NCBI RefSeq assembly: GCF_031769215.1
Contig: NW_026782078.1
Span: forward strand, 496,001 to 560,000
Source of the DNA: Ylistrum balloti
Taxonomy: Eukaryota
Direction of reading: 5' to 3'
Length of the DNA: 64,000 nucleotides
Program-made: the position numbers and the translations under genes
In this document: positions 4,860 through 64,000 of the stretch, piece by piece
Layout of the letters: every line of letters starts with the position of its first letter
Numbering within the stretch: the stretch's first letter is position 1
Notes under the pieces: model-generated
What the model saw: only the letters and a program-made list of their open reading frames with translations
Databases searched by the model: none
What the model was told of the DNA's origin: nothing

Positions 4860-6413
4860 TTAGGATGTATACCTCCTAAAGGTCGCAAAATATTCCAAAA
4901 ATGAAGTGAATCTATAGAAAACTGAGACTGGAAGTAACACTGTACCTCCTAGCTTTAACACACCCTTTGAAAACTCCCCTTCTGTCAGTATTTGTGTGAT
5001 CGGATACTGGGATAAAAGAAAAGTGTCATTAACCCACAGAACAAAGTTGTTAATCGTTGTAAATATTAGTACAGACTCGAGAAGACTGAGTCTTGAATGA
5101 GGGTCAGACTTCTTACATCGATTAGCGTGCAAAAGAAATACTACCTGAAGATAGTCTTGGAAAATGCTCAGGATGTTAGTGTAGATAAGAGGTTTAGAGT
5201 TGTTATTTTCACCATGTATAACTTTGCAGATATGTATCATGAATAAACCAAAGACTGACGATAAATAAACATATTCCCGACCACGAAGTGAGTTCATTGG
5301 GATGTCAGGACTGCAGTAGTTGACTAAGCAGAAGAATCCGACAAAGTTCGCGATTAACATCAACACTTTCAAAATTAATTCATACCAATCGGCGATGTAA
5401 CGAAGGGTTGAAGTCTTTTCTGAATGCATTGCCATAGCAGCGTAGACCATGACAAATCCGAAGCCGGTTATCAGACTTACAGCTACAGTCATCATTTGAC
5501 TAAAGTTTCGTCTGTTCCCGTAATATAAAGGCTCAGTGGTTAACACATTGGACAGAAGAGGTGATCGCTCAGAACTTTCTGGTGTGTCCATGTCTGATAA
5601 GTTTGTTTCCTTACTTCGACCGCTCGACACAGAGGGTGACCATATTTCAACAATGACCGTGCTGGACAGAAGTATAAACTCTGTGAACATAGGAGTAAGA
5701 ATACTCTTAGAATTATCCATTAGAGTCTTCATTGTGCTGTTTCTTTGTAGACAAGAAGATGCGTTCATTTCAGGATGGATATCAATAAAAGTATCAAATG
5801 TATTCCCTATTATTGAGACAAATAACTGAATACATACATTTGCAGTTAAAAGCAGGAACATCGACCATTTAACCGATGTACAATGTTTCAATCTGAACGT
5901 TGAAAAGTATGTGACGAAAATCGTTTCCACGAGAAACATGATGACTAGTAAAGCATTGAAACAAATGATAGTGTACCAATAAAGTCCTTCAACATAGTGT
6001 AAGGAACATTCTATCAGCTTGCCGAGAAAGAGAGCTGAAAACAGACTCGCTCCAAGGCCGAAAATCCAGAGGAAAAACACCTGAAGTTTTGATGTATTTG
6101 TACTTCTAGCTCTAACAACATATGCGAGGCCACCCTTCTGTACTAAACACATAAATACAATGCAAACTGCTATAGCACCGGCCATGAGTGCCGACAGGGA
6201 AAGCAAAACAACTCCCAGCCGAGTATCTGCGCCTTCGTGTATGGTCTTGGTAGCGCTGAACACTATGATCAGTGCAAAGAAGCAGAGAAATAGAACACGG
6301 AACGAGATGCTACAGTCGTAATACCAGGACCCATTCCGCCGTCTTCGGTAATTTCCACTTGTCAAGGGTAAGATGACAATTGATGACAGCAGTTTCCCAC
6401 ACCAGGAATCCAT
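4860..6413 (-). CDS. OTOP: Otopetrin-like multi-pass membrane protein, copy 1 (intronless CDS, ~517 aa)
   Basis: Long ORF with ~12 hydrophobic segments. Otopetrin-type motifs: FLWIFGLGASLFSALFLG, LLTANVC, LTPMFTEF...EIW, QDYLQVVFL, INNFVLW, LLPVSVFYRFTS. ATG at 6413; splice acceptor (ttccag) at 6426-6427 just upstream indicates a 5'-UTR intron. The ORF-track start (6422) is a TTG. Confidence 0.88.
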   Translation of the reverse strand: MDSWCGKLLSSIVILPLTSGNYRRRRNGSWYYDCSISFRVLFLCFFALIIVFSATKTIHEGADTRLGVVLLSLSALMAGAIAVCIVFMCLVQKGGLAYVVRARSTNTSKLQVFFLWIFGLGASLFSALFLGKLIECSLHYVEGLYWYTIICFNALLVIMFLVETIFVTYFSTFRLKHCTSVKWSMFLLLTANVCIQLFVSIIGNTFDTFIDIHPEMNASSCLQRNSTMKTLMDNSKSILTPMFTEFILLSSTVIVEIWSPSVSSGRSKETNLSDMDTPESSERSPLLSNVLTTEPLYYGNRRNFSQMMTVAVSLITGFGFVMVYAAMAMHSEKTSTLRYIADWYELILKVLMLIANFVGFFCLVNYCSPDIPMNSLRGREYVYLSSVFGLFMIHICKVIHGENNNSKPLIYTNILSIFQDYLQVVFLLHANRCKKSDPHSRLSLLESVLIFTTINNFVLWVNDTFLLSQYPITQILTEGEFSKGVLKLGGTVLLPVSVFYRFTSFLEYFATFRRYTS

Positions 6414-7569
6414 TGTATACAAAACCTGGAATATAGGATAAACATTTTTGATGGATTATTTATCATTTCAGGATTTATTTTTTATATTGCTGTTTTATGG
6501 ACTGATGAAAGAAAGTGAAGTTTGTGCAAATGAAGTGAACCCCGCCAATTTCACAATTTTAAAGATCGCGCCATCCAAATGCACTTTCAGCTGACCCTGC
6601 AAAACAATGGAGTATCGCCTAAGATTGGCGGGAATGGTAGATTAATAACCACAAATACAGAGAGATTCCGCATAGTGGTAAAATTGTCGAGGAAAATGAA
6701 TGGAAATACTTGATTTACAGCATTTAATTGCTCTGGGAAACATGCAATGTAGTAGAAAAATCGTTTATCTTTCCAACGGTACATGATTTGTAATCTATAT
6801 AAAGCATTGCCTGAATGCCGACCCTTGCAAGGGTCTCTAGTGTTAGGGGTTTTTATACAGGGTGGAGTTCTGACTAACACCCTCTTCCTCAGTCGACTCT
6901 TAGGTTGTAAAGATTTTGAATTTGTATGTAAAGGTGCACTTTGCTTATTGGTTTTTTGCCCAATCGTATTAGAACTATTAGCAGAAATGTTGTCCTGAAA
7001 ATTCATTTTCAGATATATTGACAATGTCTTATAATCAGATACTAAGAATGACAAAACATCGGATATATTTCTACGCGTGTTAAAACCTTTTATTTACATC
7101 TTTGCTTACAACGAAACCAAAAAGGAGATTTTCACGCAGAGTATGATTAACCTGATGATATCATCTATGTATTGTGATTTTTTTTATCTTATCGCAAAGA
7201 AACGTTAGATCCAGAATGACAAATTCATAACGTAGCAATACTGAACCATTATAACATTACAAGAACAGCCGGCAAAGGATCCACAACATAAGATAAACTG
7301 TACACATACCAGTATAGTACCACCTGGACCTGTATCATTGGTGTAAGAAAATACATGATAAACAATGTTAAGATATAGATTACTGACAGGCTATGATGAT
7401 AGGCCGCTATAATAAAATTGCCACCGTTGGTAACTTTGATATGTAAACTTCGCCAGTGGTCGGACAAGGTATACTGTACACCTGTGATGGCCCATTTAAG
7501 GAATATCGTAGGTTTTATAACTGAACAAAAAGATCTAACCAAAATTGGGACAAAAAATGTTCAACATGT

Positions 7570-8930
7570 ACTTCAAACAAGTTTCTTTGTCAACAATCGA
7601 TATCTGGTTCAGATGAAGTAGTTTTCTTATCTTGTGTGATTTATGATAAGATAAAAAACATTTCTACTGCACTATGAAGATAAGAGAAGAAAATATGACC
7701 TTCTGCTTTGATTCAGGAAGAAATATTAACTTCCAGGAGGTAAAATACTTTTCTTACTATTTGTAATGTACACATTTCCCCCGTTCGTTCGGAAGTTTCC
7801 TGTTCAGATAAATTCACATAATCGCTTCGTTATTGATCACAAAGACCAGGGTGTGCAAATGATTACAAAGCTGTACAAAATACACACAAGTAATTAGCGC
7901 CGTTAAATACCAGACAATTAAGTTTACTGGTTCGATAGTAATGTCATGTTCCAAATAGAAAATAAAGTTAACAAGAGCGAGGCATACTAACGCACCGTAC
8001 ATGGAAATAGAGGTAACACCGGGAGTGGTTGAGGGGATATGGTATTTCTTTCACTCGAGAGTTACAAAACAAAGTAACGAACGTGAAAGTAATGACATAT
8101 AGTACAATCACGAGTTAGTGCGACCTGTTTCTACCACGATCAAAAACATTCTGTAGTTGAACTCACCTGTTCTATACCCCCGTGTGTTTTGTGTACATCA
8201 TGTGTTGATGTGACCTTTGATGAAATACCGCTACCTGATATGCAAAACTGACAATGCCAAACTGATATGGGGACTCATTACATGTAATAACTAGAAATTG
8301 TACAAAAGACAGAGTTAAATAAAATATAGTTAGATACAGTAGATCTACACAATGAATTGAACTACATCATACAGCTGTCTTTTCATTCTACGGCTCATCA
8401 GTCGTGCTAAAGACCTAAATTTTGGGGTCTGAGAGGCAACTGAGGAAAATCAAAGGAATCAACAGAAACGTCAAAATCTGAAAAGGGAGGTGCAGCAGCC
8501 CCATACTTAAATATAATTAGTAATTTTCCATGAATTATGATTAAGTATATATTACAACTAGCCAATGAAATCACAGGTTTAGTAACTTATCGAAATATAC
8601 CTTATCCTACCAAAAAAAGGAAGTTTCGACAAGGCAACATATGTTTTTTTCGACAATCGTTATCTGGTGCAACGGAACTATGTGCATTTTAGTCTTGTGT
8701 TATTCGTGAACAGATTAGAAACATTCCTACTTTAGTTAGGAGATAGCAGACACAAATACTACCTGTGATGGTTCAGGAAGGCATGTATACTTCTAGTCGG
8801 TAGAAATTACTTTGTTGTGTTAACAGTGTACAAACTTCCTCATTCGGAAGATTCCTCTCTAGCGTCTCAGGAACCGCGTTGTTTAATATGCTTTCACATT
8901 GTACACACTAGGGTGTACGTAAAATAACTA
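7570..8930. repeat. Old diverged direct duplication (~7570-7870 vs ~8630-8930) upstream of OTOP-like 1
   Basis: Collinear blocks: caacaatcgatatctggttc / cgacaatcgttatctggtgc; ttcaggaag...ttccaggaggtaaaatac / ttcaggaag...ttctagtcggtagaaattac; ttcggaagtttcc / ttcggaagattcc. Confidence 0.7.
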
Positions 8931-16082: not shown

Positions 16083-19000
16083 CTACAATTTGTTCTGTTT
16101 TGAAAACTTACTTCTAACTCTGTATGCTATATGATGTGATTCCTGGAATACAAGGTCAGTTCTGTCTCTAACCCTATGTACCCAATCTTTGATCACGGGA
16201 TTCGATTCGTAAAGATCTTCCTCCCAACACGTGACCAGCTGCATCAACTCACAAACGCAAAGTAGATCGGCAACTGAAATCTCGTTCCCACACAAAAATG
16301 TCTTATTGTCCTTAAGAAAGAAAGAGGCCAGACTAGAAACAGCTTTCCGCACCTGGTTTCTTTCGTTCTCTACCAGGTGCCACTGTATTGGAGCTTTGTT
16401 GAGTATCGGCAATCTTATCTATAAAATACGTTAAAAATAATTAGTTAACTATGTTAGTATATGTAATGATCACAGTTTAGAAATAAGACCGTAACTGGGA
16501 AAGATAAGAAGTCAATAGGACATAAATCGCTTACTTCATTTTGTTCACTGAAGTGGCTTCATCTTATCTAAATAAAAACATTTAAATGATTTATATTTAT
16601 TTACCCCATTGTGACCCGCTCCTCCTGCTTCTATATTCAATGACGATTCAGACCAAATATGTACAAAATTCAATCCATGTCACAGGTGTAAGTACGATTT
16701 CAAAGAGTTGGCTCCATTTCCCCCTATTTTGACTTACCGCAACTCCCGCCCCAGGAGACCGTGAGCCAACAGTTTTACAACACTGAGTTACATTCACCCA
16801 AGAATGCAAATTTTGTTCATTATCCCCCAAGTATGCTTTTGAAAAAAATTGGTCGAAATCAGCTCAGTCGTTCATGATAACATGTAGTACAAATTCGTTG
16901 AAAAGTTGACGGATGGACGACGGACATTGCGGTATGTTATAAGATGGCTTTTTCCATCGAGCCAAGTGAGCTAAAACGTTTATTGGCATCGACGCTACAT
17001 GGTGGACATCCGTTCAGCAGGTATCAGTTTGAAATATAACATTATTATCCGATAAGTCACATGAACCAGCTTTTGATCCCCCAGGGTATAGGCTACGTTA
17101 GTGCATTGGAATTCATTTGAGAAAGATCAAATCGACCTCGCTAAAGGTCAGTACAAGCACGATTAAAATGATTAGGTAATGAATTTATAACACATACATC
17201 TCTGTCAAGATGCTTATCAACATTAATTAATACCTAAAAATCTAAGGTAGTAGTCATGGTGACACAGATATGTAAGTTCACGGTTAGGAAAGTCAATTGA
17301 AAGCAATGTCCCGTTTCTAGATAAAACACCACAACTACAACAGTTTTAATAAACTTTAAAAAAAAATGATATTCCAATGTTTCCTTATTGGTACCTCTCC
17401 TTACATAAATACTTACAAGTTCCCGAAATAATGAAGTACAACTGTATCTAGTGTTCAAGTGATGCCAGTTCATGGATTCGTCAACTCTGGCCTGCGCGTT
17501 GAGATCACTACGTGGATACCAGTGGTCAGACACATTGTATTTAATGGCAAGGTATTTCAGGATAGCAACACTATAATGAAACAAATGGTCAGTTCTGTTC
17601 AATATTAGAAGCTCGCAGTAGCAGTAAAGGAAAAATCTATATTGTCTATTAATAGAGATAATACGTTTTCTTGTCTGAAAAGAATAACGAATGTATCACA
17701 ACATTGTGATATGCTGACAAAATACATATCATTATCACGGTAGGCTACAAAAATACCTGACAAAATTGTGATTAACTACCAAAATACCTAACCTAACAAT
17801 ATTGATACAAATTCAACTAAAATTATCATGATGAGCTATAAAATGTCTAACATCTTCGCGACATGACTCAAACATTATCGTAATTGACTGTAATCACTTC
17901 TATGAACTAATACTAGCGAGTGTTTTGTATCCACTGTACATATCATTCGGATGAAGGAATATCATCAGATAAATAGTTACATTCTTCACGCTATACTCAC
18001 CTCTCTGTGAGTATGAATCCGTCATCATCTATAACAGGTACCTGACAGAGAGGGGTGATCTTTCGGAACCAGTCAGTGTAGTGTTCATCTGTAAAATTAC
18101 ATCATAAAAAATAAGACTATACAGAAAATTTTATTTGGCATTTCTGAGTTATCTTTAAGATTTTGCTTTCAGCATAACATGAAAGAGATATATCAGCTGA
18201 ATTTTTGAAGACATTAAACAACTTTAGAAATAATCAGTTTTATAATTGAATACGACTTCAGTCCTAATGGATACGTATTAGTTAAGAACGTTATCCACTG
18301 TTAAAGGGAATAAAAAAGGTATGGAGTATTACCTCCTGATTCCTAAATGAGACCAACAGTAAATTGGAACAAGTGAATGTTCTATTTCGATGAATTTGGA
18401 TAGTTAGACACATTGAGCTTTATCCCAATAGTAACCATGAAAAATATCTTGGATTTATGTTATGTTTTATTTTCTATAAATCTTAAAAATCTACCTTTGG
18501 CAATATACACTAACCATGATGTTTTCCCCGGCTGCAAAAGCATTTTTGACGCACAGCGCACATAACTTTTAGGTAACTAAATTTATCTATTGTGAATTTA
18601 AATCCTAACTTCGAAAGTTGATGCAGCTGTGCGCTGATACCGAAAAACTGAATATGCGTATGCTTTCAACCTTGAACTGTAGCACACACGTCAGTGGAAA
18701 TTTTATGGGGTCGCACGTTTCAACTCATCTACTTGTATCATTAGAATTTTTTTTTAATACACTTTTTGTTAATAAACTACTTCTAGTAGAGAGTGTTGTT
18801 GAACTTCATTATTCATATTCATACGCATTGCGGTAATTCCTGACCGAAATGCGTTCGATGAGTTACATAATAGTGCCAGTGACAAAAGAGTCCTACCTGA
18901 TAATGTTAGAGATATGATAAAATTTCATTTCAATTTTCAATGTAGATTTAGGATAAAAAATATACATTTCCTAGCTTAAATCAAGATAATTTTCCTGTAT

Positions 19001-20741: not shown

Positions 20742-20944
20742 NNNNNNNNNNNNNNNNNNNNNNNNNNNNNNNNNNNNNNNNNNNNNNNNNNNNNNNNNNN
20801 NNNNNNNNNNNNNNNNNNNNNNNNNNNNNNNNNNNNNNNNNNNNNNNNNNNNNNNNNNNNNNNNNNNNNNNNNNNNNNNNNNNNNNNNNNNNNNNNNNNN
20901 NNNNNNNNNNNNNNNNNNNNNNNNNNNNNNNNNNNNNNNNNNNN
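20742..20944. other. Assembly gap (203 N) in the spacer of the inverted duplication
   Basis: Run of N. Confidence 1.
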
Positions 20945-24640: not shown

Positions 24641-24679
24641 GAAAATGTATTCTACTTATGCTTTTTATCAATCATATGT

Positions 24680-28400: not shown

Positions 28401-28827
28401 ATACAAGAGTTAGAATGAGAGTTGAATAACACCAACCTATTGTGGTAGAAACTATCATAATAAACGAATTACTTTGTATTAAATTTTACAGATGAGTTTG
28501 CCGATACTCAACAAAGCTCCAATACAGTGGCACCTTGTTGAGGAAGAAAGAAACCAGGTGCGGAAAGCTGTTTCTAGTCTGGCCTCTTACTTTCTTAAGG
28601 ACAATAAGCCATTCTTGTGCGGGAACGAGATTTCAGTTGCCGATCTACTTTGTGTTACTGAGATGATGCAGCTGGTCACGTGTTGGGAGGAAGATCTTTA
28701 CGAATCGAATCCCGTGATCAAAGATTGGGTACAGAGGGTTAGAGAGAGAACTGATCCTGTGTTCCAGGAATCACATCATATAGCATACAGAGTTAGAAAT
28801 AAATTTTCAAAACAGAACAAATTGTAG
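25449..28827 (+). pseudogene. GSTT1: GST theta copy C: exon 1 lost. Exons 2-4 intact at 26343-26430, 26872-27022, 28492-28827
   Basis: Homology to GST-B stops after ATG TTA C (25449-25455), so the catalytic-Ser exon is absent. Exon 2 has cis-Pro CCT>CTT (QVP>QVL) and exon 3 has an in-frame 3-nt deletion. Exons 2-4 keep open frames and splice sites. Could instead be a variant coding gene (see findings). Confidence 0.75.
27483..27860 (+). mobile_element. Non-autonomous MITE/HINE-like element in GST-C intron 3 (paralog of 16600-16976)
   Basis: ttttcgctcacctgactcgatggaaaaagcc...gcgtccgtcgtccgtccgtcaacttttcc is the reverse-complement homolog of the GST-B copy. Confidence 0.5.
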
Positions 28828-41553: not shown

Positions 41554-41664
41554 ATATCTTCTGCAATGTCATTATCAGCAGAATTATCTGGCTCATAGCT
41601 CCACTAACTAGTAATCCCACTTCGCCATTTTATTTCTAAACACTATTCATATCACTACAACGAT

Positions 41665-42681
41665 ATGAAGGTCTTTTTGGCTATCGGACTATTTGCCTGT
41701 CTATGCATGGCAGTTTTAGGCGATGGTTATGGTAATGGCGGGAACAAAGCACTTCCGGCGAAACCGTTTTGGCACGACGAACCGTCATTACACCGACATG
41801 GTGCTGTAGGACTTTATCCTAATAACATCCAATTAGCTGGAAACTTTTTCCAGTACCAGCCTCACCAACCAGCCCCATCGTTTCATGGTCCTAAAAAAAC
41901 TATACTTCACAAGTTTGGAGGAAAGGGTTTCAACGGTTATGGAAATAATGGTCCTAAAGTGGGAGCTCCAGGTATTCAGCACCCTCCAGTGATGCCCCTA
42001 CCGTACCACGGATATGGGGAAAGTGCGGTGGGATTTTCCGGAGGATTTGATCCTTACTATGTCGACCCTCGACCTGGTATTCCAGAAACCCTGGACTATC
42101 TTGTAGCTAGAGGAGGAGAATTCGTCAAAAAGAATTGGCAACGTAAGTACACTGTAATTTTGTACTTAATCGACCTGTTCATTTTGTATTTATATAACAT
42201 TATCTAAATATTTATCTTTTTTAATTTTTTTACTGATCCTTTTCTAAATGATAAGAAAAGTAATTTGTTATTATGGTAGCATTCCGAAAAAACAGAATGA
42301 AATAAACAATTGAAATTGATTTAATACAGTGGATGATATTTTAAATTTTGTATATATATCATAATGAATTATTACTAAGGAAAATACGTAAGTTTGATAT
42401 CAATACCTGATTTATTTTTTTGGTTATTTCTACATGGTTCAGAAATCAGTAGAACTGGATTTGAGATATATTTGGCTCCTATTGATCAAAAGTGTTTACT
42501 ATGAGCATTTACTGAAACACTTAATGTTTTGTCGAAAAAAAAGATATCTAGTTACCGATATTTAAGATTTTTGCATTATCATTAAAACTCAATGTATTTT
42601 TTATCTAAATTTAATATTTTGTAACTTTCAGCTCTCGCATTGGCTGGAGCAGGACTGTACCTTCTGAAAAAGAAAGGATAA
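41665..42681 (+). CDS. Secreted Gly/Pro/His/Tyr-rich low-complexity protein, 175 aa (unknown family). Exons 41665-42142 and 42632-42681
   Basis: Signal peptide MKVFLAIGLFACLCMAVLG. Donor C|gtaagt at 42143 and acceptor tttcag at 42630-31 give the in-frame tail P-LALAGAGLYLLKKKG*. Upstream TATA; AATAAA at 42777-42782. Confidence 0.85.
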
Positions 42682-43282: not shown

Positions 43283-44914
43283 TCAACGGCAGTGTAAGAC
43301 ATGACGTGTACAATTTTTACTGTACATTTTAAAAGTTGCAAACAGCTCCAGTGCAGATGAAAACCTGAAGAAAATACTAGTTGGTAGGAGAACGTGATAG
43401 TAAAGGTTCATTACAATGTCTCCGAGGATTTGTTTTTCAACGTCTTTGAGAACTGAAAATTGTTCTACAATGAAACTATCACTCATCCATATGTTCAAGT
43501 TGATAACCATAAGGAATATCAGTACACAATCAAGAAGATGAACATTTGTTTGTATGTTAGATATTTTACACCTGTTAGCATGAAGCAGAAATACAACTTG
43601 TAAATAAATCTGTACTATTCCGAGAATGTATGTAATCAAGTTTAGTTGTGCGATAGGACCTTGTGTGTAATAAGCCGAGACAATCTCACACACGTGTATC
43701 ATGAGGATCCCTAATACAGACGACAGATACACATATTCACTAACTTTCAAGGGCTTATTTGCCCTGTCCGGCTTACAATAATGAACTAAACAGTAAAATC
43801 CGACAAAGTTTGCCACAATCATAGCGATAGTAATGATAGTATGATACCTTTCCATCATCATAAGTATCTCAGCATTTTTGGGAAACCATACACAAACTAA
43901 ATAAGAAACATCCAAACCTAAACCGATGACTACAGTCACAAAAAACGTGACGAGTTGCTGGATAGTCCGACCGGGTCTTGCACCAGAGGATCTGTCTTCG
44001 TTGTCAACAGAGATTTCCAAGAGCGTTGATCGGTCGTTTACAGAATAACTCAATCGATTAAGTTCCTGGTATGTCTGTACCTCCTCTTCAGAGCTGTTTT
44101 CTGTCGTAGTAGGAGACCACATCTCTAAAAGCATTGTGACAGATAGTAAGCAGAACTCTAAGAAACAAGGATTAGAAACTGTTTTGAATTTGTTGATAAT
44201 AGTTCCAAACGTACCGTTTTGAATACAGTATAGAATGTTACTACTGTTGCCGAACTGTTTCTCAAGGATATTGTCAGGGAAAAGCTCGTTGTCTATGATA
44301 ACACTATGTAGCCACACTGAAACATTGGCAGACAAAAGTATAAACAACACGTAACGAATGAAGGTAGAGTTTCTAAGGTTATACTGAACAAAATAACTGA
44401 TGAATATTATTTCAGTAAATAAAAATAGCATCGTTATTGAATTGAAAATCAATCTAGAATTCCAGAAAAATCTACCTCCATCTATGATGGAATTGTAAAC
44501 CTCACACACACTTTGCTGTCCTATTAGACTAATTGAAAGCAAGCCGGCCACTATTCCGAAAATCCAGAGGAATATTATCTGTAGCTTGGTGATGTTTCCC
44601 TCTCGCCTCTTCGACACTACCAATGCTAGACCATGCTTTTTGATGATGCAGCCGAGAGTAACACATGCAGCCACTCCCAAGACCATGATTGTCGTTAGTA
44701 ACAAGAACACTACCCCCATACGCTTTTCCTGGTCGTGATCAATATTCTTGCTGATCGTAAATATGATGATGACAGCAAGGAAGATGAGAAAGAAAACTGT
44801 AGACGATATAGTACCGTCGAAATACCTGGAACCATTTTGTCGCCTTTGGTAATTCCCAGCTGTGATCGGCAGAATTACTAATGCCGTGACCAGGTCTTTG
44901 CAAATATTCCCCAT
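43283..44914 (-). CDS. OTOP: Otopetrin-like protein, copy 2 (intronless CDS, ~543 aa)
   Basis: Same motif set as copy 1: FLWIFG, LLSANV, NPCFLEF...EMW, QIYLQVVFL, INLNIW, LLPTSIFFRFSS. ATG at 44914; acceptor ttccacag at 44944-45. Confidence 0.88.
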   Translation of the reverse strand: MGNICKDLVTALVILPITAGNYQRRQNGSRYFDGTISSTVFFLIFLAVIIIFTISKNIDHDQEKRMGVVFLLLTTIMVLGVAACVTLGCIIKKHGLALVVSKRREGNITKLQIIFLWIFGIVAGLLSISLIGQQSVCEVYNSIIDGGRFFWNSRLIFNSITMLFLFTEIIFISYFVQYNLRNSTFIRYVLFILLSANVSVWLHSVIIDNELFPDNILEKQFGNSSNILYCIQNGTFGTIINKFKTVSNPCFLEFCLLSVTMLLEMWSPTTTENSSEEEVQTYQELNRLSYSVNDRSTLLEISVDNEDRSSGARPGRTIQQLVTFFVTVVIGLGLDVSYLVCVWFPKNAEILMMMERYHTIITIAMIVANFVGFYCLVHYCKPDRANKPLKVSEYVYLSSVLGILMIHVCEIVSAYYTQGPIAQLNLITYILGIVQIYLQVVFLLHANRCKISNIQTNVHLLDCVLIFLMVINLNIWMSDSFIVEQFSVLKDVEKQILGDIVMNLYYHVLLPTSIFFRFSSALELFATFKMYSKNCTRHVLHCR

Positions 44915-47609
44915 CACAATGTAAGGTCGTTCCCTTATTTGGCCTGTGGAAAATTATAAAAAAAATATTCAACATTGATTTAGAAAGAGGTAATTTAAGA
45001 TATAACAACCACATCCTGAACAAGCAACAACTTGTGATTTATATTCAAACGAGTACATCCGATTACTATGGTTAAATGTTTTGTTTATCAAGAACCTATT
45101 ATGTCCGTCTTTGATGGCCATAGCTGTTGACATTACATAAAGGGATAGACAACTAAACTGAGCCAATGTGGCCAAGAGGTACCGGTAGACTTCTTTCCTC
45201 GGAGTGTGACGTGCAATTGTTTTCGTTGCGATCACATATACGCTTAGTGTCTAGAGTGTAAAACATACTGAGATTGATATAAAACATTTTTGATATTTCA
45301 ATCACCATCTTACATACAACAACTTGGGATGGTTTCTTGTCCGTTATAAAGGGCATTCGGCGTCCATCGAATTCGAAGGGATTATCGAGACATCCAAATT
45401 TATACCACCACTTTCGATTTAGATTTATAACTCTGTATTTGTTTTATGTTCTATGTATGTGATGTAACTTATATAATATTTGTGTCTTGATAAATGGAGA
45501 GATTGTCTCGCAAATTTGACAATTCACTTATCCGTACTGTTGCTATTACTTCATTATATATCTTCTATCATTTATATTATGATGTCACCTCATTTTGGCG
45601 AAATTAAATAGAACTTAAATAACGAAAAGCTCCTACTTGAACCATTTTTATAGACATTTAGAAGCAACGTAACAAGCACTCCTCGTCAACCTATAGTTTC
45701 AAGAACTTGTGCCAATATGATGATTAATGTTACATATTTTGATGGAGTGCTGACGAAAAAGAAAGTTTTGAGAAAAGAAAACTGTTTAATGTATTTTTAT
45801 CCTCATCAATTTGAAACTTCCTGTTTTGATATTGATGCTTCTGTTTATTCTATATCAGCTATCACTGTCCTCAGTGTGAGGAAGCAACGTTACCTAAATT
45901 TTCATATTTAGACATCCTCGACACACTATTTAAACTGTGTAAATCTGTCTTCTGTTTACATTCCAACTGTTATATATCTTATTTGATACATAGCGAATTC
46001 TTTATTTGGAAACCATGACGTTTATGGCTTGTGAGAAGGTTATCCCAGAGAAGAGCCTATTTCAACATCTGTATGTTACCAATCCCTAATTTAAATATTT
46101 ATCTCCAATTTGAACGACCAAAATCAAGTCATACCTGACTGAACTCGACAATTTTGCAATGTCGATCGTGTACGCAATGACGCCTTCGTTTGAACAGTTG
46201 TGAGTACCATCTACACATTAAAAACAAGCAATGAGTCAATATTCTCACCAATTTTGCAAAACTGATCACAGCTAATTTTGTTAATTGCGTTGATAACAAA
46301 ATTCAAGTAACTTAGTCATTGTAATGGAGAATTGTTTTGCCATTTCTACATATATTTTAAGATAACTCTCTACCCAATGTTACACTGAATATCAAACTCT
46401 GAATACAATACTTCTTTTGAAAAGGTTGTATGAAATCCCCACATATAACTGCATGTATTGAAGAAAAACAAACAACGGTTTGAAAAAGGCTTTAACCGGT
46501 ATTAATTCTCGTTATTTTCAGTTACATATATGTAAATTTAAAAGAGATTTTTCATAGGTAGTAGAAAACATGGCGTTTTGGCGCTTTAATTGTATTGCAA
46601 GAATGAGTTAAAATTGTGTCTTATTATTCTTGATAAAAGTCCTATGACAATGAAATGTTAACACACATTACCAAAATAGAAGCATTGCTGATAAAGCCAG
46701 GAAATAAAACATAGATATACAAACTATGAACAACAATACAAAATGTTTTTTTTTTTTTTTTTTTTTTTTGGTAATTGTTTGAATATATTTTTCAATGTTT
46801 TCTATATTTGATATCAGTAACACTTATCTTTTCTATCATTTTTGTGTGTAAATCGGGCCCACGAATAAGCTTTTCTTACACATATATATTAGAGACAATT
46901 ATCACGGATATAACTACATTACAACTATGATGTATAGCTGTAGCATATCTAACTATTCTCTTATCTCAATCTATAAATGCCCTATATTGATAACGTTCCA
47001 CCTACCTTACACCAAGGTAAGATATATCACTTCCTTGTACCTTTCGGCAGTATAGCAAACAACAGTCTATTTTACATAAAAGGGACAGAATATATAAATG
47101 TGTATCGTAGATTCTGAGCATGCGCTAATTGGTCCTTAATTTAATGCACAATATGTGATTGTTATAAAAGAAATATAATAGGAATGTCACAGATACAAAT
47201 TACATTTGTATGTTGTATGACAAGGAAGTCAATTTTATACAGGAAAACCCGAAATCTGAAGACCTTATTGAACAGCATTTGCTAGCAGAGAGTGGCGCAT
47301 TTGAATCAGTGTCACTTGATACAACTTCCGTGTTTGCAGGTTAAAACATGGATAAAACTTGAATGGGACATTGTTACAATATTTGTTTAAACAGGCTTTA
47401 AAAACTTTTCAATGACAGGACTTGGACAACCAGAGTTTGTTCCAGTTATGGACAAAAGCTCTTGTACAACACGATTTCAATACAATATACTACACCATTC
47501 CCACACGAAGCTGAATTTATTGAAGAGCTTATCAAAATAGGTCACAAAGACATTGCAAATTCGTTAGTTTAATTTCGCTTTAATATGCATCTTTTCTCTA
47601 AATAACAAG

Positions 47610-47995: not shown

Positions 47996-48669
47996 TTATT
48001 TTTATGCGATATGAATCTGGGCGTGTTTGATGCTCAGTAGTTTGCATATTGGTTCCGTTGTTGTATACCTTGTTCTCATTTGACTGTAAAAGATTTAAAT
48101 GGCGGGCGTCGTCAATGAAGTAAAAGACGCTAACTCTTCCGAAACACATAGTCTTATTCTTCTTGTACTTTTTTCGGATTCTCCGTGTAAATTTTTCTTT
48201 TGTTCATATGTTTTCTTAGTAGGAAGGAATTTGAGTTTGGATAACAATCCTGTTGACATATTGGTTATTTCTTGTGTTGACAATACCACAGAGACATTGG
48301 GAAAGTCATAGATTTAGCTGCTTTCCTGAGTTGTGACATTTCTTTCCACCACAATTGACATTGTCAACTGATGAAGATCGGTACATGTACTGAATGACGG
48401 GTACTTAGTAGTTACTTTTACCTCTATGTGCACTACGATATTGTGAACTGCATCCTGATTTCATTCCGACCATTTGTGTTGATAAAACTGACTCTAGTTA
48501 TTTTATATCCGTGAGTGCCTTCCCTCTACTCCTTAACATTATGTCACAGTACACCAATTTAAAAAAATAATGTAAAAAGGTGTCAATCAATCTGCCGTAT
48601 TTTCTCCAATCCTTTACATCTTAGCTGGTCCACAAGAGGTCATAAACATGATAAAGTCTGTTTATATAG

Positions 48670-48908
48670 ATTGCACATACAATTACTGTCACTATATGAA
48701 GGACGATCCCTAATCGATTTCCTTCGTATGTTAATATTCATTTGCTGGAAGTGAATAGTATCACTATTATGGCGATAATCAAAAACAGGACACGGGACGG
48801 GATGCTACAGTCATAATGCCGCGATCCATTAGGTCCTCTCCGGACATGTCCGGCTGCAAATGGTAAAATAAAGATGGACGTAAACAGCTTGCCGAACAGT
48901 GAATCCAT
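48670..48908 (-). pseudogene. OTOP: Otopetrin-like pseudogene, 5' fragment (copy 5)
   Basis: MDSLFGKLFTSIFILPFAAGHVRRGPNGSRHYDCSIPSRVLFLIIAIIVILFTSSK*ILTYEGNRLGIVL. Clear homolog of the copy 3/4 N-terminus with an acceptor before the ATG, an in-frame TGA at 48740-48738, and loss of homology after ~80 codons. Confidence 0.88.
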
Positions 48909-49466
48909 GACTGAAAAAATGTTGTTACTGAATGTCTCACATTGAGAATTTCCAAAACATTATTTATATGGACTGTATGGTTACTTTGGTTCTTGAGATA
49001 AGATATGTTATAAATCAGCATTTAAATACTTTTGCACTAACAACGGTGTATGTTCATAAAGATTTGATTTTATCCAAATTCTGATCCAAGTAGAAGACAC
49101 AAGAAAGAGCACCTAGGCGGACAACCATGCCTCAGTGAATCATATTATCGGCTTTAAAGCATACGGTAGTAAAATATTTCGACTTAAGATAATAAATGTT
49201 TTGTTGGATATATTGACACTTCATTGGTTAATGCCTACCAGGTCTTGTTACTTTCTCACTATAACGTTGTCTCTTTTCCTATCAGTTAGCGCGAGAATAC
49301 CACAGAATATTGTGTTATGGTAGAAAATATCATTACTACAATATATCAATATTATATAAAAGACATCCAAAAAGATATTTATTACAAACTCAACATGACG
49401 AGCATATTATACTCGATGTCAGCGACTTTGTCTAACTATGATTGTAGAATATTGAAAAGCCGATGT

Positions 49467-52457: not shown

Positions 52458-54155
52458 CTAGGAGTTATACTTCCCAAAGGTTGCGTAGTATTCTAAAAAA
52501 GAAGTGAATCGAAAGAACACGGCTACGGACAATAAAAACCCATATACTTGATCCAATAATTCTTTAGAAAAATGAGCATTTTCTAATATGCGGGTACTTG
52601 GAAATTCAGCTATCAGGAAACTATAGGTAAACCAAAAAACTACATTCATGATCATTGTAAATATCAGGACCGATTCCAGTAAATCGACCTTGGATCGACC
52701 TTTCTGACAACGATTTGCCTGCAATAGAAAAACAACCTGTAGGTAATCCTGGAATAAACTTAGGATGCTTTTATAAAAAAAAATACTAGTGGCTGAATCG
52801 GGTAAAATATCACCGCCTAATATCTCGTAAAAATGAAACATAAAAACGCCGAATGCTGACAGCAAATAGACGTAATCGCATGGCCGTAGCGGTTTCGCTG
52901 TTTTATCAGGAACACAATCATTAATTAAACAAAAGAAACCAATAAAGAGCACAAGTGTCATTATAACTGTTAAAGCAAGCTCATACATTTCTGTGGCGTA
53001 ACGGATTTTGTCTAAATTTCCTATATCCATTGCCTGAGTGATATAACATATGACAAGTCCAAGTCCTGTTATTAAACTTCCAGCCAGTGTAAAAATATGT
53101 GATACCTTCTGTCTACTGCTATTGGCTTGTTGATTAACCTCGATTTCGGACATGGGACTACATGACTGGTATGGCATCTTACGTCTACCATCATTGTCTG
53201 GTTGATAGGTCCCGATTTCGGCCTGCCCGCTCCCGGGCTGTGTATCATCGCTAGAGGGAATGAGAGGTAACCGTTCGGAGTCAACTTGGTTAGTCTCATT
53301 TACCATAGTTGTGTGTTCGGAATCCCCCGGGTCATTGTCACGTGATTCGCTCTCAGAATGTGTCGACTGTATCGGTGACCATATTTCAAGAAGAATTGTA
53401 ATTGATAGAAGGGCATATTCAGCAAATGCTGGACCAAGAAAAAGACTTGATTTATGTAGAAGAACAATGATTGTACTGTTCCTTTCTATGCATGCTACGA
53501 GGTTATTATCAGCGCTGATTTTCTTAATCAGCTCAAATGTATCCCTCACGAAATATATGTACAGTATTACAGATATATTCGCTGTTAGAGCTAAAAACAT
53601 CACACAATTCACTGAAGTTGTCTGCCTCAGTTGAAAATGTGAAAAGTAGGAAAGAAAAACCATTTCAACGAATATCGAAAGAATTAACGTGACATTAAAA
53701 CAGAATAATATATTCCAAAAAAGATCTCCGTTAGTTTTTGAAAAACATTCCAGTTGCTTGGCGAGGAAAAAAGCACAATAAAATCCCGATGCTAAGCCGA
53801 AAACCCACAGAAATATCATCTGAAGCTTCATGGTGCTCGTATTTCTTCTGGCAGCAACCACAGAAAGGAGACCATGTCTCTGTACCGAAAATGCTAAGCT
53901 CAATATGCCTAACATTGTACAGACCATGATCACTGTCAGTAGAAACATAACCATCCCCCGTCGAATTCCTGCATGTGTTAATATATTAGGGCTGGAAGTG
54001 AAAACTAACACCGTTGTAGCGATGATCATCAGCAGGACACGGGACGAGATGCTACAGTCATGATACTGCTGTCCATTCCGTCGTCTCCGAACATGTCCGG
54101 CTGCAAACGGTAGAACGATAATTGACATAAACAGTTTACCACACGTGGAATCCAT
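52458..54155 (-). CDS. OTOP: Otopetrin-like protein, copy 3 (intronless CDS, 565 aa)
   Basis: Motifs FLWVFG, LALTANI, GPAFAEY...EIW, QDYLQVVFL, IMNVVFW, VFFRFTS. Acceptor at 54163-64. Confidence 0.9.
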   Translation of the reverse strand: MDSTCGKLFMSIIVLPFAAGHVRRRRNGQQYHDCSISSRVLLMIIATTVLVFTSSPNILTHAGIRRGMVMFLLTVIMVCTMLGILSLAFSVQRHGLLSVVAARRNTSTMKLQMIFLWVFGLASGFYCAFFLAKQLECFSKTNGDLFWNILFCFNVTLILSIFVEMVFLSYFSHFQLRQTTSVNCVMFLALTANISVILYIYFVRDTFELIKKISADNNLVACIERNSTIIVLLHKSSLFLGPAFAEYALLSITILLEIWSPIQSTHSESESRDNDPGDSEHTTMVNETNQVDSERLPLIPSSDDTQPGSGQAEIGTYQPDNDGRRKMPYQSCSPMSEIEVNQQANSSRQKVSHIFTLAGSLITGLGLVICYITQAMDIGNLDKIRYATEMYELALTVIMTLVLFIGFFCLINDCVPDKTAKPLRPCDYVYLLSAFGVFMFHFYEILGGDILPDSATSIFFYKSILSLFQDYLQVVFLLQANRCQKGRSKVDLLESVLIFTMIMNVVFWFTYSFLIAEFPSTRILENAHFSKELLDQVYGFLLSVAVFFRFTSFLEYYATFGKYNS

Positions 54156-56960: not shown

Positions 56961-57299
56961 TTGTTTGAACAACTGGATCCTGGTGATAGGCCAAAATTTG
57001 AACCAATGACAAATAAGATCAATTGTTCAAAAAAGGAAAGCGTATTTTTTCCTTCATCGGCTTCATTAGAATCTCGGTCAATCTACGTAAATATTGTTAC
57101 GATCCAAGATACTAATAAGACTTTACAATAAAAGGAAAAACCATGCCAACAAGCAACACTTTAGGACGATTAAAATGACGTCATCGAAAGTTGCCAGCAA
57201 TAAAAAAGACTTTATATAGCATAAGAGTGTTTTAATGTTGGAATTGAATTATGTAAATTTGCAAGTGTTAGTTCTGGAAGTGTACCAACAATTTTCACG

Positions 57300-60200
57300 C
57301 CAAATACCACACAAATATAACACCAAATACTACATAAAAATTGCACCAATTATCACACAATAATAACGTCACATATCACATAAATGTAACACCACATATC
57401 ACACCCATAGAACATCAAATATCACACAAATGTAACTCCAAATATCATTCAAAGGTAACACCACATATCACACAAATGTAACACCACATATTACATAAAT
57501 ATAACACCAAATATTACACAAATATCACACAAATATAACACCATATATCACACAAATATGACACCACATATCACACAAATATAACACCACATATCACACA
57601 AATGTAACACCACATATCACACAAATACAACACCGAATATCACACAAATATAACACCACATATCACACAAATGTAACATATCACACAAATATAACAGCAA
57701 ATATCACACAAATGTAACATCATATATCACACAAATGTAACATATCACACAAATATAACACCAAATACCACACAAATATTACACCAAATATCACACAAAT
57801 ATAACACCACATATCACACAAATGTAACACCACATATTACACAAATATAACACCACATATCACACAAATGTAACACCAAATATCACACAAATATTACACC
57901 ACATATCACACAAATATAACACCAAATATCACACAAATATTACACCACATATCACACAAATGTAACATCATATATCACACAAATGTAACACCACATATTA
58001 CACCAATATAAGAGCAAATATCACACAAATGTAACACCACATATCACATAAATGTAACATCACATATCACACAAATATAACACCAAATATCACACAAATA
58101 TTACACCACATATCACACAAATGTAACATCATATATCACACAAATGTAACACCACATATTACACCAATATAACAGCAAATATCACACAAATGTAACACCA
58201 CATATCACATAAATGTAACATCACATATCACACAAATATAACACCACATATCACACAAATGTAACACCACATATCACACAAATATAACACCACATATCAC
58301 ACAAATATGACACCACATATCACACAAATATTACATCAGATATCGCATTCATGTAACACCAAATACCACACAAATATAACACCAAATATCACACAAATAT
58401 TACACCAGATATCGCATTCATGTAACACCAAATACCACACAAATATAACACCAAATATCACACAAATATTACACCAAATATCACACAAATGTAACATCAC
58501 ATATCACCCAAATATAACACCAAATATCACACAAATATTACATCAGATATCGCATTCATGTAACACCAAATACCACACAAATATAACACCAAATATCACA
58601 CAAATATTACACCAGATATCGCATTCATGTAACACCAAATACCACACAAATATAACACCAAATATCACACAAATATTACACCAAATATCACACAAATATA
58701 ACACCACATATCACACAAATGTAACACCACATATTACACAAATATAACACCACATATCACACAAATGTAACACCAAATATCACACAAATATTACACCACA
58801 TATCACACAAATATAACACCAAATATCACACAAATATTACACCACATATCACACAAATGTAACATCATATATCACACAAATATAACACCACATATCACAC
58901 AAATATGACATATCACACAAATATAACACCAAATATCACACAAATATTACACCACATATCACACAAATGTAACATCATATATCACACAAATGTAACACCA
59001 CATATTACACCAATATAAGAGCAAATATCACACAAATGTAACACCACATATCACATAAATGTAACATCACATATCACACAAATATAACACTAAATATCAC
59101 ACAAATATAACACCACATATCACACAAATGTAACACTAAATATCACACAAATATAACACCAAATATCACACAAATATTACACCACATATCACACAAATGT
59201 AACATCATATATCACACAAATGTAACACCACATATTACACCAATATAAGAGCAAATATCACACAAATGTAACACCACATATCACATAAATATAACACCAC
59301 ATATCACACAAATATAACACCACATATCACACAAATGTAACACTAAATATCACACAAATATAACACCACATATCACACAAATATAACACCACATATCACA
59401 CAAATGTAACACTAAATATCACACAAATATAACACCAAATATCACACAAATATTACACCACATATCACACAAATGTAACATCATATATCACACAAATGTA
59501 ACACCACATATTACACCAATATAAGAGCAAATATCACACAAATGTAACACCACATATCACATAAATGTAACATCACATATCACACAAATATAACACTAAA
59601 TATCACACAAATATAACACCACATATCACACAAATGTAACACTAAATATCACACAAATGTAACACCACATATCACACAAATACAACACCGAATATCACAC
59701 AAATATAACACCACATATCACACAAATATAACACTAAATATCACACAAATGTAACACCACATATCACACAAATATAACACTAAATATCACACAAATGTAA
59801 CACCACATATCACACAAATACAACACCGAATATCACACAAATATAACACCACATATCACACAAATATAACACTAAATATCACACAAATGTAACACCACAT
59901 ATCACACAAATATAACACTAAATATCACACAAATGTAACACTAAATATCACACAAATGTAACACCAAATATCACACAAATATAACACCAAATATCACACA
60001 AATATAACACTAAATATCACACAAATATAACACCACATATCACACAAATACAACACCGAATATCACACAAATATAACACTAAATATCACACAAATATAAC
60101 ACTAAATATCACACAAATATAACACCACATATCACACAAATGTAACACCACATATCACACAAATATAACACCACATATCACACAAATGTAACACCACATA

Positions 60201-61872
60201 TCACACAAATGTAACATCACATATCACCCAAATACAACACCGAATATCACACAAATATAACACTAAATATCACACAAATATAACACTAAATATCACACAA
60301 ATATAACACCACATATCACACAAATACAACACCGAATATCACACAAATATAACACCACATATCACACAAATATAACACTAAATATCACACAAATGTAACA
60401 TCACATATCACCCAAATACAACACCGAATATCACACAAATATAACACTAAATATCACACAAATGTAACACTAAATATCACACAAATATAACACTAAATAT
60501 CACACAAATGTAACACCAAATATCACACAAATATAACACCACATATCACACAAATATAACACCAAATATCACACAAATATAACACCACATATCACACAAA
60601 TATAACATCAAATATCACACAAATATAACACCACATATCACACAAATATAACACCACATATCACACAAATATAACATCAAATATCACACAAATATAACAT
60701 CAAATATCACACAAATATAACACCAAATATCACACAAATATAACACCACATATCACACAAATATAACATCAAATATCACACAAATATAACATCAAATATC
60801 ACACAAATATAACACCAAATATCACACAAATATTACACCACATATCACACAAATATAACACTAAATATCACACAAATTTAACATCACATATCACACAAAT
60901 ATAACACCACATATCACACAAATATAACACTAAATATCACACAAATTTAACATCACATATCACATAAATGTAACATCACATATCACCCAAATATAACACC
61001 AAATATCACACAAATATTACATCAGATATCGCATTCATGTAACACCAAATACCTCACAAATATAACATCAAATATCACACAAATATAACACCATATATCA
61101 CACAAATATAACACCACATATCACACAAATATAACACCAAATATCACACAAATTTAACATCACATATCACATAAATGTAACATCACATATCACACAAATA
61201 TAACACCACATATCACACATATAACATCAAATATCACACAAATGTAACATCAAATATCACACAAATATAACACCACATATCACACAAATGTAACATTACA
61301 TATCACACAAATGTAACACCACATATCACACATATAACATCAAATATCACACAAATGTAACTCCAAATATCATTCAAAGGTAACACCACATATCACACAA
61401 ATGTAACACCACATATTACACCAATATAACACCACATATCACATAAATATAACATCAAATATCATACAAATGTAACATCAAATATCACACAAATGTAACA
61501 CCACATATCACATAAATATAACATCAAATATCATACAAATGTAACATCAAATATCACACAAATGTAACACCACATATTACACCAATATAACAGCAAATAT
61601 CACACAAATATAACACCACATATTACACCAATATAACAGCAAATATCACACAAATATAACACCACATATTACACCAATATAACAGCAAATATCACACAAA
61701 TATAACACCACATATTACACCAATATAACAGCAAATATCACACAAATGTAACACCACATGTTACACCAATATAACAGCAAATATCACACAAAGGTAACAC
61801 CACATATTACACCAATATAACACCAAATATCACAAATATTACACCAAATATCACACACATATAACACCAAAT
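57300..61872. repeat. 4.6-kb satellite, 23-bp monomer (atatcacacaaat[ag]taacacc[ac]), ~200 copies
   Basis: Continuous A/C-rich, nearly G-free array on the + strand, with variant blocks spaced at multiples of 23 bp. Confidence 0.99.
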
Positions 61873-62523
61873 AACTGAATGACATATTCGTTACTTCATT
61901 TTTAAAACTCAAAATGCAAGTTATATGTGGTGACAAAATTTCAAGAACATTAATGAACTGAAAAATAAACAACAAAAAAGCTGTAGGAAACATGTGGTAT
62001 ACATTGCTGTAGCTAAACATTGTTTTCGTAAGGCACAATATTTAATGATCTGTTTAATAATCATAGACACAGTAAAAAGATTTTTTTGTCTCGATTCGTA
62101 ATTAAATGGTAAACATATATATTTTATAATGATAATGGCGAGGAAAAGTAATGAAAAGGCAGAAGTAAAATGTACAATGTAAATAAATGTATATTGAAAA
62201 GCGAATACTAAACGAAGTAAAAGTATATCGAGTCTTTTTAGTCTCAAATATAATTTCTTTTTCTAAAGAACCTGTTACAAAAAGCTGTGAAAAAAATGTC
62301 ATTGGGAAACAAAAGACAATATACTGCCGAATTTGTCACCCGTCAACAGAAAAAATACAGTTAGAAATGTCGATAAAAGGGAGAGGGTAGTATGAAAGAT
62401 ATGTGCTGTTTCACAACAAAAATGTTGCTTTTAGGGAAAACTTGTTTTGGTGTTAAATCCTATGGCAGGGTTACATTATACATTTATGATTTTTCTATTA
62501 CGTATGATTATGTAAAGAATGGT

Positions 62524-64000
62524 CTACGTGGTAAGCTTGTTGAAGGTTGTATGGAATTCTATAAAAGATGTAAATCTGAAGAAGACAGACATCGGTAGAA
62601 ATATGTCATACAACAGAGAACTTATATCTTCTGGAAGTTCATCTTGTGTCATTATCCGGGTCCTTGGAAATTCAGATAACAGAAAACTGTCGTTTAACCA
62701 CAGGATAAAGTTACTGACCATGATAAAAATCAGAACTGATTCGAGCAAATTCAGGTTTGATCGAGGATCAAACTTCCTACATCGATTAGCACAGAGTAAA
62801 AAGACAACTTGAAGATAATCTTGAAACATACCAAAGGCGCTTCTATACAAATGTAGTGGCGCTAAGTAATCGGACGACATGTCACCGGCGATTCCTTCAG
62901 ATATATGAGTGATAAAAATTCCAAAAGCCGACAACAGATACACATATTCTCTAAGCTTCAAACCAGTTGGTGAACCATTGGGACAGCAGTAACTGATTAA
63001 ACAAAAGAATCCGGAAAAAAGAGCAAGCGTCATGATACATTTCAAAATAAGTTCATACATTCCGGCGACATATCTAACAATTTCGATGTTTCCTATATCC
63101 ACAGCCATGGTTACGTAACAAATAACCAGTCCAATTCCCGTCGTTAAACTTACTGCCAATGTTACCATCTGACACAATGTCCTTTTACTTCTGTTTTCGG
63201 AATGTGGAGGACTAGTGCTGGCGACATTATCAAGCAGTGGTATCGTCTCAACCGTGTCCATGTCACTACTCTCCACATATACAAGATCACTTGAATCACT
63301 TTCTGGATTGTGTTTCGTTATGGGCGACCATATTTCAAGAATGATCGTGCAGGACAGAAGAGAATATTCCACACACGTTTGGTTTAAAAGTTGTCTCGCG
63401 TTTGCCTTAAAAGATGTTATGGTGCTGTTGTTTTGTAAACAGGAAACAAATTGGTCTTCAGAGCTGATTTCTTTAAAATATGACAGAGTATTATGCATAA
63501 TGTAAATGTAGATAATAACAGATATATTTGCAGTTAAAAGCATAAACATTACATAATTCACCAAGAGAGTCTGTTTCAATTTGAATGACGAAAAGTACGT
63601 TATTAAAATCATCTCTGAGAATAAAGACAAAATCAATAGTAAATTGAAACAAAATAAAGCCCTCCAATAAAATCCATCTGTTGATGTAACAAAACACTCG
63701 ATCTGTTTGCCGACGAATAATGCACAATACAATCCAGATGCCAGGCCAAATCCCCAAAGGAAAATAACCTGAAGTTTTGTGGAACCGCCATTTCGTCTTG
63801 AAGTTACCACGGATTGAACACCATTCCTCTGTACGAAACAGCCAAGGACGTAAATGCCAGTCAACCCAGAGACCATTGATAAGGACAACAGTATAACGAC
63901 GATTCCTAATCGATCTTCCGCGTGCGTGTGTATTCCTTTGCTGGAGGTAAAGACTATCACAATGGCAAGAACGATCAGGAACAAAACACGCGATGTAATG
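62524..64000 (-). CDS. OTOP: Otopetrin-like protein, copy 4 (5'-partial; frame open to the window edge)
   Basis: Reads ...ITSRVLFLIVLAIV at the edge. Motifs FLWGFG, LLTANI, NQTCVEY...EIW, QDYLQVVFL, VSNFILW, LPMSVFFRFTS. About 40 N-terminal residues lie beyond 64000. Confidence 0.9.
   Translation of the reverse strand, partial: ITSRVLFLIVLAIVIVFTSSKGIHTHAEDRLGIVVILLSLSMVSGLTGIYVLGCFVQRNGVQSVVTSRRNGGSTKLQVIFLWGFGLASGLYCALFVGKQIECFVTSTDGFYWRALFCFNLLLILSLFSEMILITYFSSFKLKQTLLVNYVMFMLLTANISVIIYIYIMHNTLSYFKEISSEDQFVSCLQNNSTITSFKANARQLLNQTCVEYSLLSCTIILEIWSPITKHNPESDSSDLVYVESSDMDTVETIPLLDNVASTSPPHSENRSKRTLCQMVTLAVSLTTGIGLVICYVTMAVDIGNIEIVRYVAGMYELILKCIMTLALFSGFFCLISYCCPNGSPTGLKLREYVYLLSAFGIFITHISEGIAGDMSSDYLAPLHLYRSAFGMFQDYLQVVFLLCANRCRKFDPRSNLNLLESVLIFIMVSNFILWLNDSFLLSEFPRTRIMTQDELPEDISSLLYDIFLPMSVFFRFTSFIEFHTTFNKLTT

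Follow-up and report, generated by a model that had tools for sequence, protein, structure and literature searches.

What becomes of proton handling in an otopetrin that has lost the histidine of its proposed proton relay? This question is raised by four otopetrin-like genes in a 64-kb stretch of Ylistrum balloti DNA (the window, i.e. the whole stretch of 64,000 nucleotides that was analysed), which encode threonine or serine at the position of this histidine in transmembrane helix 12 (TM12). In the 2024 model of conduction, a buried glutamate in TM6 takes up the proton and passes it to the TM12 histidine, which flips and releases it into the inner cavity; a bridge between the histidine and an aspartate in TM9 slows proton release and underlies desensitisation (PMC11343839). 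The Glu325–His567 proton-transfer bridge was observed in the structure of C. elegans OTOP8, and the relay Glu and His are termed “absolutely conserved” (PMC11343839). As this leading model explains otopetrin conduction and desensitisation by a single Glu and a single His, a His-free branch represents a natural test of it, in a channel family linked to acid sensing and to the mineralisation of calcium carbonate. A literature search on bivalve, scallop or oyster otopetrins and on natural His-less members returned nothing relevant. The four genes described here are old, selectively maintained paralogues of a subfamily that has expanded in scallops in the form of intronless tandem genes, and a strictly conserved hydroxyl residue occupies the position of the TM12 histidine.

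The genes, referred to as c1 to c4, are four long open reading frames (ORFs) on the minus strand. All are intronless, and their products share 32–46% pairwise identity over the full length. The c1 gene (4860..6413, within an ORF of 4860-6422) is a single coding exon for 517 amino acids, read from the ATG at 6413 and with the stop codon included in the interval. The c2 gene (43283..44914, ORF 43283-44917) encodes 543 amino acids from its ATG, and c3 (52458..54155) encodes 565, with a long loop between TM6 and TM7. A preliminary description of this DNA had counted four intact copies; the number of genes is correct, but c4 (62524..64000, listed ORF 62524-63984) is partial. It is open in frame to the last base and is cut off there by the end of the window, which leaves out about 38 N-terminal codons.

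Sequence, topology and fold all assign c1–c4 to the otopetrin domain family. The Pfam domain Otopetrin (PF03189) was matched by c1, c2 and c4 with expect values (E) of 2.5e-16, 1.8e-18 and 6.4e-16, respectively, at scores of 59–67 bits vs. a cut-off of 27.8, the match covering the C-terminal two-thirds of these proteins only. For c3 there was no Pfam match at E<=0.01, and it was assigned by its full-length identity of 40–46% to c1 and c4. A word-index search provided 24 homologues, namely 20 named scallop proteins (Argopecten, Mizuhopecten, Pecten and Ylistrum), three others, and the window's own c2. The best homologues of c1 are Argopecten and Mizuhopecten proteins with 61% identity over the full length, which shows the ORFs to be complete single coding exons. 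The public annotation of the scallop homologues reads “uncharacterized”, “Otopetrin-2” or “OtopLc-like”. Sequence identity to vertebrate otopetrins amounts to 12–16%, and profiles were required for a comparison with the solved structures: c2 alone gave a marginal match (E 0.6), whereas an 81-member family profile (HMMER) retrieved mouse OTOP2 (E 6e-45), chicken OTOP3 (4e-42), Xenopus OTOP3 (5e-41), zebrafish OTOP1 (9e-35) and C. elegans OTOP8 (6e-30).

The AlphaFold2 model of c1 (m73b20c90427c; pLDDT 90.2, pTM 0.89) displays twelve long helices, arranged like those of vertebrate OTOP1/2/3 in two six-helix halves. Its twelve top structural matches were all solved OTOP entries, with VIA Z values of 18–23 over residues 38–517 (Z 19 for C. 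elegans OTOP8), followed by 10.7 for the next entry. Despite these values, superposition on the solved OTOPs resulted in a root-mean-square deviation (rmsd) of ~15–17 Å and TM-scores of 0.3–0.45. An altered barrel arrangement in the clade was considered on these grounds and rejected, as the control, an AlphaFold2 model (mfbc0c88802b0) of the canonical, His-containing oyster protein P0037, gave equal figures in Foldseek (rmsd ~16 Å, TM-score 0.3–0.45; VIA was run on c1 only). The high rmsd is an effect of the method or the models and is not clade-specific. Both models are confident (pTM 0.88–0.89), and the relative placement of the barrels in both may differ from that in the experimental structures.

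Residue homology was taken from HMMER profile alignments to the solved structures of zebrafish OTOP1 (6NF4), chicken OTOP3 (6NF6), Xenopus OTOP3 (6O84) and mouse OTOP2 (8UG6); the solved entries of C. elegans OTOP8 are 8UG4/8UG5. The reference residues are the Gln/Asn/Tyr triads Q174/N204/Y268 and Q433/N528/Y571 together with E267 and H574 in zebrafish OTOP1, and Q175/N205/Y266 and Q429/N503/Y546 in chicken OTOP3 (bioRxiv 10.1101/542308); Q232/D262/Y322 and Q585/N623/Y666 together with H669 and D509 in Xenopus OTOP3 (PMC6483595); and the Glu/His/Asp sets E325/H567/D439 in C. elegans OTOP8 and E250/H551/D369 in mouse OTOP2 (PMC11343839). Against this background, the TM12 motif F-[YF]-R-F-[TS]-S of the window copies (FYRFTS in c1, FFRFSS in c2, FFRFTS in c3 and c4) aligns gap-free with F-Y-R-M-H-[SA] of the four vertebrate structures, placing Thr or Ser opposite zebrafish OTOP1 H574, Xenopus OTOP3 H669 and mouse OTOP2 H551. 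The longer motif P-x3-F-[YF]-R-F-x-S is gap-free in three independent alignments. In c1, the position is T503 (codon 4905..4907, minus strand); the corresponding codons specify Ser in c2 (43358-43360) and Thr in c3 (52503-52505) and c4 (62569-62571). A histidine relocated within TM12 was considered as well and rejected, there being no conserved TM12 His across the copies.

The other substitutions listed in the preliminary description fared differently. All quoted strings are present in the sequence, i.e. SMFLLL, VLFILL, VMFLAL and VMFMLL in TM5 and VETIF, TEIIF, VEMVF and SEMIL in TM4, in addition to those of TM12. In TM4, the glutamate (E163 in c1, codon 5925..5927, minus strand) indeed lies opposite the N-barrel triad glutamine of zebrafish OTOP1 (Q174), chicken OTOP3 (Q175), Xenopus OTOP3 and mouse OTOP2. 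The claim of a second lost histidine in TM5 is not supported. When zebrafish OTOP1 G-V-I-H-A-V-F-T-N is aligned with S-M-F-L-L-L-T-A-N of the clade, the histidine falls opposite the residue after the Phe that was said to replace it. Mouse OTOP2 carries Phe in this column, and chicken OTOP3 and Xenopus OTOP3 carry Leu; His is found in OTOP1 only among the solved structures aligned, and in only 10 of ~130 representatives from the search described below. As aligned, the supposed loss is a one-residue misalignment of an OTOP1-specific residue, and a family-wide TM5 histidine does not appear to exist.

The residues reported as retained are found in place in the profile alignment, namely N192 (TM5), E245 (TM6), Q423 (TM10) and N456 (TM11) in c1 numbering. 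E245 (codon 5679..5681, minus strand) is equivalent to the buried TM6 glutamate of zebrafish OTOP1 (E267), Xenopus OTOP3 (E321) and C. elegans OTOP8 (E325). R501 of TM12 is likewise kept, and these five residues as well as the TM12 Pro are common to c1–c4 and vertebrate OTOP1/2/3; the position that partners the TM12 Arg holds Gln, as in OTOP3. Conversely, the scallop proteins differ from the vertebrate OTOPs in TM12 (Thr/Ser for His), in TM4 of the window copies (Glu for Gln) and in the triad Tyr, which is often Phe, apart from their low sequence identity, intronless coding regions and tandem arrays. In the C-barrel, c1 keeps Q-N-Y (with Y500 in TM12), and c2, c3 and c4 show Q-N-F. In the N-barrel, the Tyr is Phe in c1 and c2, and the triads of the window copies read E-N-F or E-N-Y; none of the copies has canonical Q-N-Y triads in both barrels. 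Judged by these alignments, c1–c4 lack the TM12 His and intact Q-N-Y triads, both of which define the canonical Glu/His-relay channel. C. elegans OTOP8, an invertebrate otopetrin, has the buried TM6 Glu in common with the scallop proteins, but these hold no equivalent of its His567, so that the bridging state could not form.

The distribution of these traits was analysed in an exhaustive search of representatives with a clade profile, which returned 672 proteins at E<=1e-3. Counts for representatives refer to the best 150 of the 672, aligned to the clade hidden Markov model; these are the proteins nearest to the query and not an unbiased sample of the family. Within the scallop clade, the TM12 column is Thr in 22 and Ser in five sequences (27/27) at pairwise identities of 32–60%. 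Among the other representatives, His is present in 52 of 130, the remainder including Gln (13), Lys (13), Asn (12), Glu (11) and Thr (6) besides other residues. The TM12 His is thus absent from 78 of the 130 nearest representatives in which this column is aligned. Named examples of His-less proteins stem from Mizuhopecten (Thr), Mytilus species (Lys or Glu), Pinctada (Gln), Ostrea (Phe) and Tegillarca (Gln), and named His-containing relatives from oysters, Tegillarca and the hemichordate Saccoglossus. In the TM4 triad column, the scallop clade is divided between Glu (15), Gln (7–9) and Asp (3) vs. Gln in 99 and Glu in 21 of 128 other representatives. The TM6 Glu is present in 29/29 scallop-clade sequences, including two fragments without TM12, and in 119 of 136 other representatives. 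Besides this residue, the 27 scallop sequences are invariant at the TM12 Arg, TM10 Gln, TM11 Asn, an acidic column at E256 and the acid at the start of TM9 (Glu in 16, Asp in 11; E380 in c1), and near-invariant at His394 in TM9 and at Glu in position +4 from the TM12 substitution (E507 in c1), each in 25/27.

Two trees were built, an IQ-TREE quick tree with the trait columns removed and a FastTree tree. IQ-TREE recovered a His-free clade of 38 rows with an SH-aLRT support of 99, consisting of 26 scallop-clade rows and 12 other representatives, some of which are from Mizuhopecten. A His-free group of 59 rows in FastTree was discarded as it is not one clade in IQ-TREE; only the 38-row clade is robust. 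Changes between His and other residues number at least 13 on IQ-TREE and 12 on FastTree, and changes between Gln and acid in TM4 at least 11 and 11, respectively. The substitutions are thus not special to the four genes. The preliminary description had named as its refutation that such changes are common in invertebrate otopetrins, and for the TM12 His this is largely the case among the nearest relatives; TM4 Glu is no clade trait either, given that scallop paralogues carry Glu, Gln or Asp. The alignments and trees point to a large bivalve subfamily as the distinctive unit, rather than the four-gene cluster. Canonical bivalve otopetrins, such as Crassostrea virginica “proton channel OtopLc-like” (P0037) and the proteins from Saccostrea (P0040), Ostrea edulis (P0060) and Tegillarca (P0039), have the same domain and a similar length as the scallop genes. 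Unlike these, they keep Q-N-Y and His and fall outside the 38-row clade. Two further searches added little: a profile built from 32 His-less relatives, run in the word-index search with a cut-off of 1e-10 that was too strict, gave two proteins, and a homologue search with P0028 gave one new protein.

Two side observations concern the His-less relatives. The TM6 Glu has been lost in some of them as well, being Ala in P0173 (Tegillarca granosa) and Gln in P0038, P0044, P0046 and P0066; parts of the subfamily hence lack both relay residues. In a mussel-type group (P0073, P0074, P0076 and P0077 from Mytilus californianus, and others), TM12 reads Y-H-F-E or Y-R-F-K/E and the normally acidic TM9 column is His, which looks like a His/acid pair swapped across TM9 and TM12.

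The age and integrity of the window copies were assessed from their relatives and from a second individual. Each copy groups in the tree with proteins of other scallop genera, so that the duplications are older than those genera. Moreover, several of the scallop homologues lie on common contigs with adjacent locus numbers, which indicates tandem clusters that are conserved among scallops. For c4 and its Ylistrum balloti counterpart (78–79% amino acid identity), a dN of 0.126 and a dS of 0.340 were obtained, and the resulting dN/dS of 0.37 points to purifying selection of a fairly relaxed kind. In a genomic run of a second individual, c1 differed by eight substitutions, four of them synonymous and four conservative, with no indel; the flanks carry indels. 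The ORFs extend over 486–565 codons in DNA of 32–36% G+C.

What, then, might these proteins do? As the TM12 change hits the obligatory proton acceptor of the 2024 model (PMC11343839), it is fair to expect altered conduction from the replacement of His by Thr/Ser. The canonical Glu-to-His hand-off would not be able to operate. Kept in c1–c4 are the buried TM6 Glu, the TM9 acid, the TM12 Arg and most of the barrel-lining Gln and Asn. Given the invariance of the buried Glu, proton handling has most likely persisted. Its inner leg would then comprise the TM12 hydroxyl, water and nearby carboxylates; candidates among the latter are E507 one turn below, the TM9 acid (E/D380) and E256, a clade-specific residue at the inner TM6 end. 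The His–Asp latch of canonical fast desensitisation would be absent, and weakly or non-desensitising currents, different kinetics and pH dependence and possibly a lower conductance are expected on this account. That proton handling persists through such a hydroxyl/water/carboxylate inner leg, without His-dependent desensitisation, is our tentative preference, put just short of probable. The wider and more specific proposal that a bivalve-expanded otopetrin branch conducts protons without the TM12 His, from E245 to the hydroxyl of T503 and on to E507, E380 or E256, is rather unlikely to hold in full. Three residues are conserved in the clade and rare in His-containing relatives, i.e. E256, H394 (outer half of TM9) and D420 (one turn before the TM10 Gln). 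A role of E507 as a clade-specific compensation was considered too and rejected, since an acid at +4 is found in 29 of 52 His-containing representatives; it is common in that group as in the scallop clade.

Several points weigh against proton conduction along this path. The carboxylate/hydroxyl route is proposed from helix positions only, and the alignment of the vertebrate TM9 Asp with E380 of the clade is accurate to within one residue, as one of two profiles puts the clade acid opposite the vertebrate Asp and the other puts it one residue later. In the C-barrel, 20 of 27 clade members have Phe for the triad Tyr, a residue that is mutation-sensitive in Xenopus OTOP3. For an ion channel, a dN/dS of 0.37 represents relaxed constraint. 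The only run holding the locus is the genomic run of the other individual mentioned above, and none is recorded as RNA. Finally, H669A and H669Q of Xenopus OTOP3 are dead channels (PMC6483595), making simple loss of conduction a serious alternative.

Under this alternative, the proteins would be neofunctionalised non-channels that have given up proton conduction following loss of the His and, often, of the triad Tyr residues, and that act as a sensor or receptor, pass another permeant species or serve as a modulatory dimer partner of canonical otopetrins. The Xenopus OTOP3 mutants come closest to the scallop proteins in that a non-titratable residue occupies the His position while the TM6 Glu and the TM9 acid remain, and here His to Ala or Gln kills the channel (PMC6483595). 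They are single laboratory mutations, whereas the scallop proteins occur in nature, are maintained by selection and show accompanying changes (E256, H394, D420, and Phe in place of the triad Tyr). The loss of the TM6 Glu in outgroup members of the His-free clade (the four Gln proteins above) and in the ark-clam protein with Ala fits a defunct relay, and intronless tandem arrays, the dN/dS of 0.37 and the lineage-specific multiplication resemble fast-evolving receptor families. Still, the TM6 Glu, TM12 Arg, TM10 Gln and TM11 Asn are invariant in the 27 scallop-clade sequences, which is hard to explain for an obsolete path, and the hydroxyl at the His position itself is strictly conserved. We regard the non-channel explanation as doubtful but as one that has to be taken seriously.

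A second alternative retains the relay and moves its titratable histidine, with His394 in TM9 acting as acceptor or gate. This column is His in 25/27 scallop-clade sequences and in several of the nearest outgroups vs. four of 52 His-containing representatives, and the mussel-type relatives, with Glu in TM12 and His in the TM9 acid column, appear to show such a relocation; His in the latter column was counted in 14 of the 78 representatives that lack the TM12 His and in none of the 52 that contain it. However, the gain of His394 is phylogenetically clustered and the association is without statistical weight. His394 belongs to the outer half of TM9, 14 residues (~21 Å) further out than the acid of this helix, and aligns with S397 of zebrafish OTOP1 between the dimer-interface residues W394 and W398 (bioRxiv 10.1101/542308). 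A position near the dimer interface makes its presence in the inner cavity unlikely, and a moved histidine is improbable overall. Least likely by far, and already contradicted by the data, is an alignment artefact or a set of decaying copies, which the distance to vertebrate otopetrins, the lack of a Pfam match for c3 and one truncated fragment in the cluster might suggest, but which the gap-free TM12 motif under three independent alignments, the long ORFs in A+T-rich DNA, conservation across genera at the dN/dS given above and the intact c1 of the second individual speak against.

Persisting proton handling, as favoured here, and its loss would both be of consequence. With the His absent from most of the nearest representatives, among them named proteins of scallop, mussel, pearl oyster, oyster and ark clam, and the Glu kept in the majority, either otopetrins move protons without the His or a large functional shift has gone unrecognised. 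If conduction without His is real, the Glu–His bridge would be one of several solutions and not the mechanism of the family, and the swapped TM9-His/TM12-Glu pair of mussels would be a third. Proton permeation would then be constitutive or non-desensitising, which would suit, for instance, acid–base handling in calcifying or sensory tissues. The natural variants point to candidate compensating residues. At the level of the subfamily, the observation challenges the current mechanism in a useful and testable way; the specific picture of the preliminary description was partly wrong and is not confined to the cluster.

The remainder of the window adds context to the cluster, at a G+C content of 29–37%. 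Between c2 and c3, a truncated otopetrin pseudogene fragment (48669..48911, minus strand) covers about 80 N-terminal codons with 60% identity to c3; it holds an in-frame stop after ~57 codons, and similarity ends past ~80 codons. No otopetrin similarity was found between 6422 and 43316 by tblastn with all four proteins. An assembly gap (20742..20944) falls in this interval, inside no otopetrin copy and at distances of 14 kb and 22 kb to its nearest neighbours among them, and is thus irrelevant to the otopetrin finding. Exon-sized ORFs with matches to the N- or C-terminal glutathione S-transferase (GST) domains are located at 569-1033(+), 2421-2759(+), 16086-16412(-) and 28492-28824(+). They flank c1 on both sides and occur also between c1 and c2, so that GST genes are interleaved with the otopetrin copies. 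An ORF on the plus strand (41665-42207) encodes 180 amino acids; its start resembles a signal peptide and its body is rich in Gly, Pro and Tyr. It has no Pfam match and lies ~1.1 kb from the c2 stop codon, on the opposite strand and in convergent orientation. Between c3 and c4, a satellite of 4.6 kb (57300-61873) is built from ~199 copies of a 23-bp unit with 85% matching, and this repeat accounts for the strong GC and AT skew of the region.

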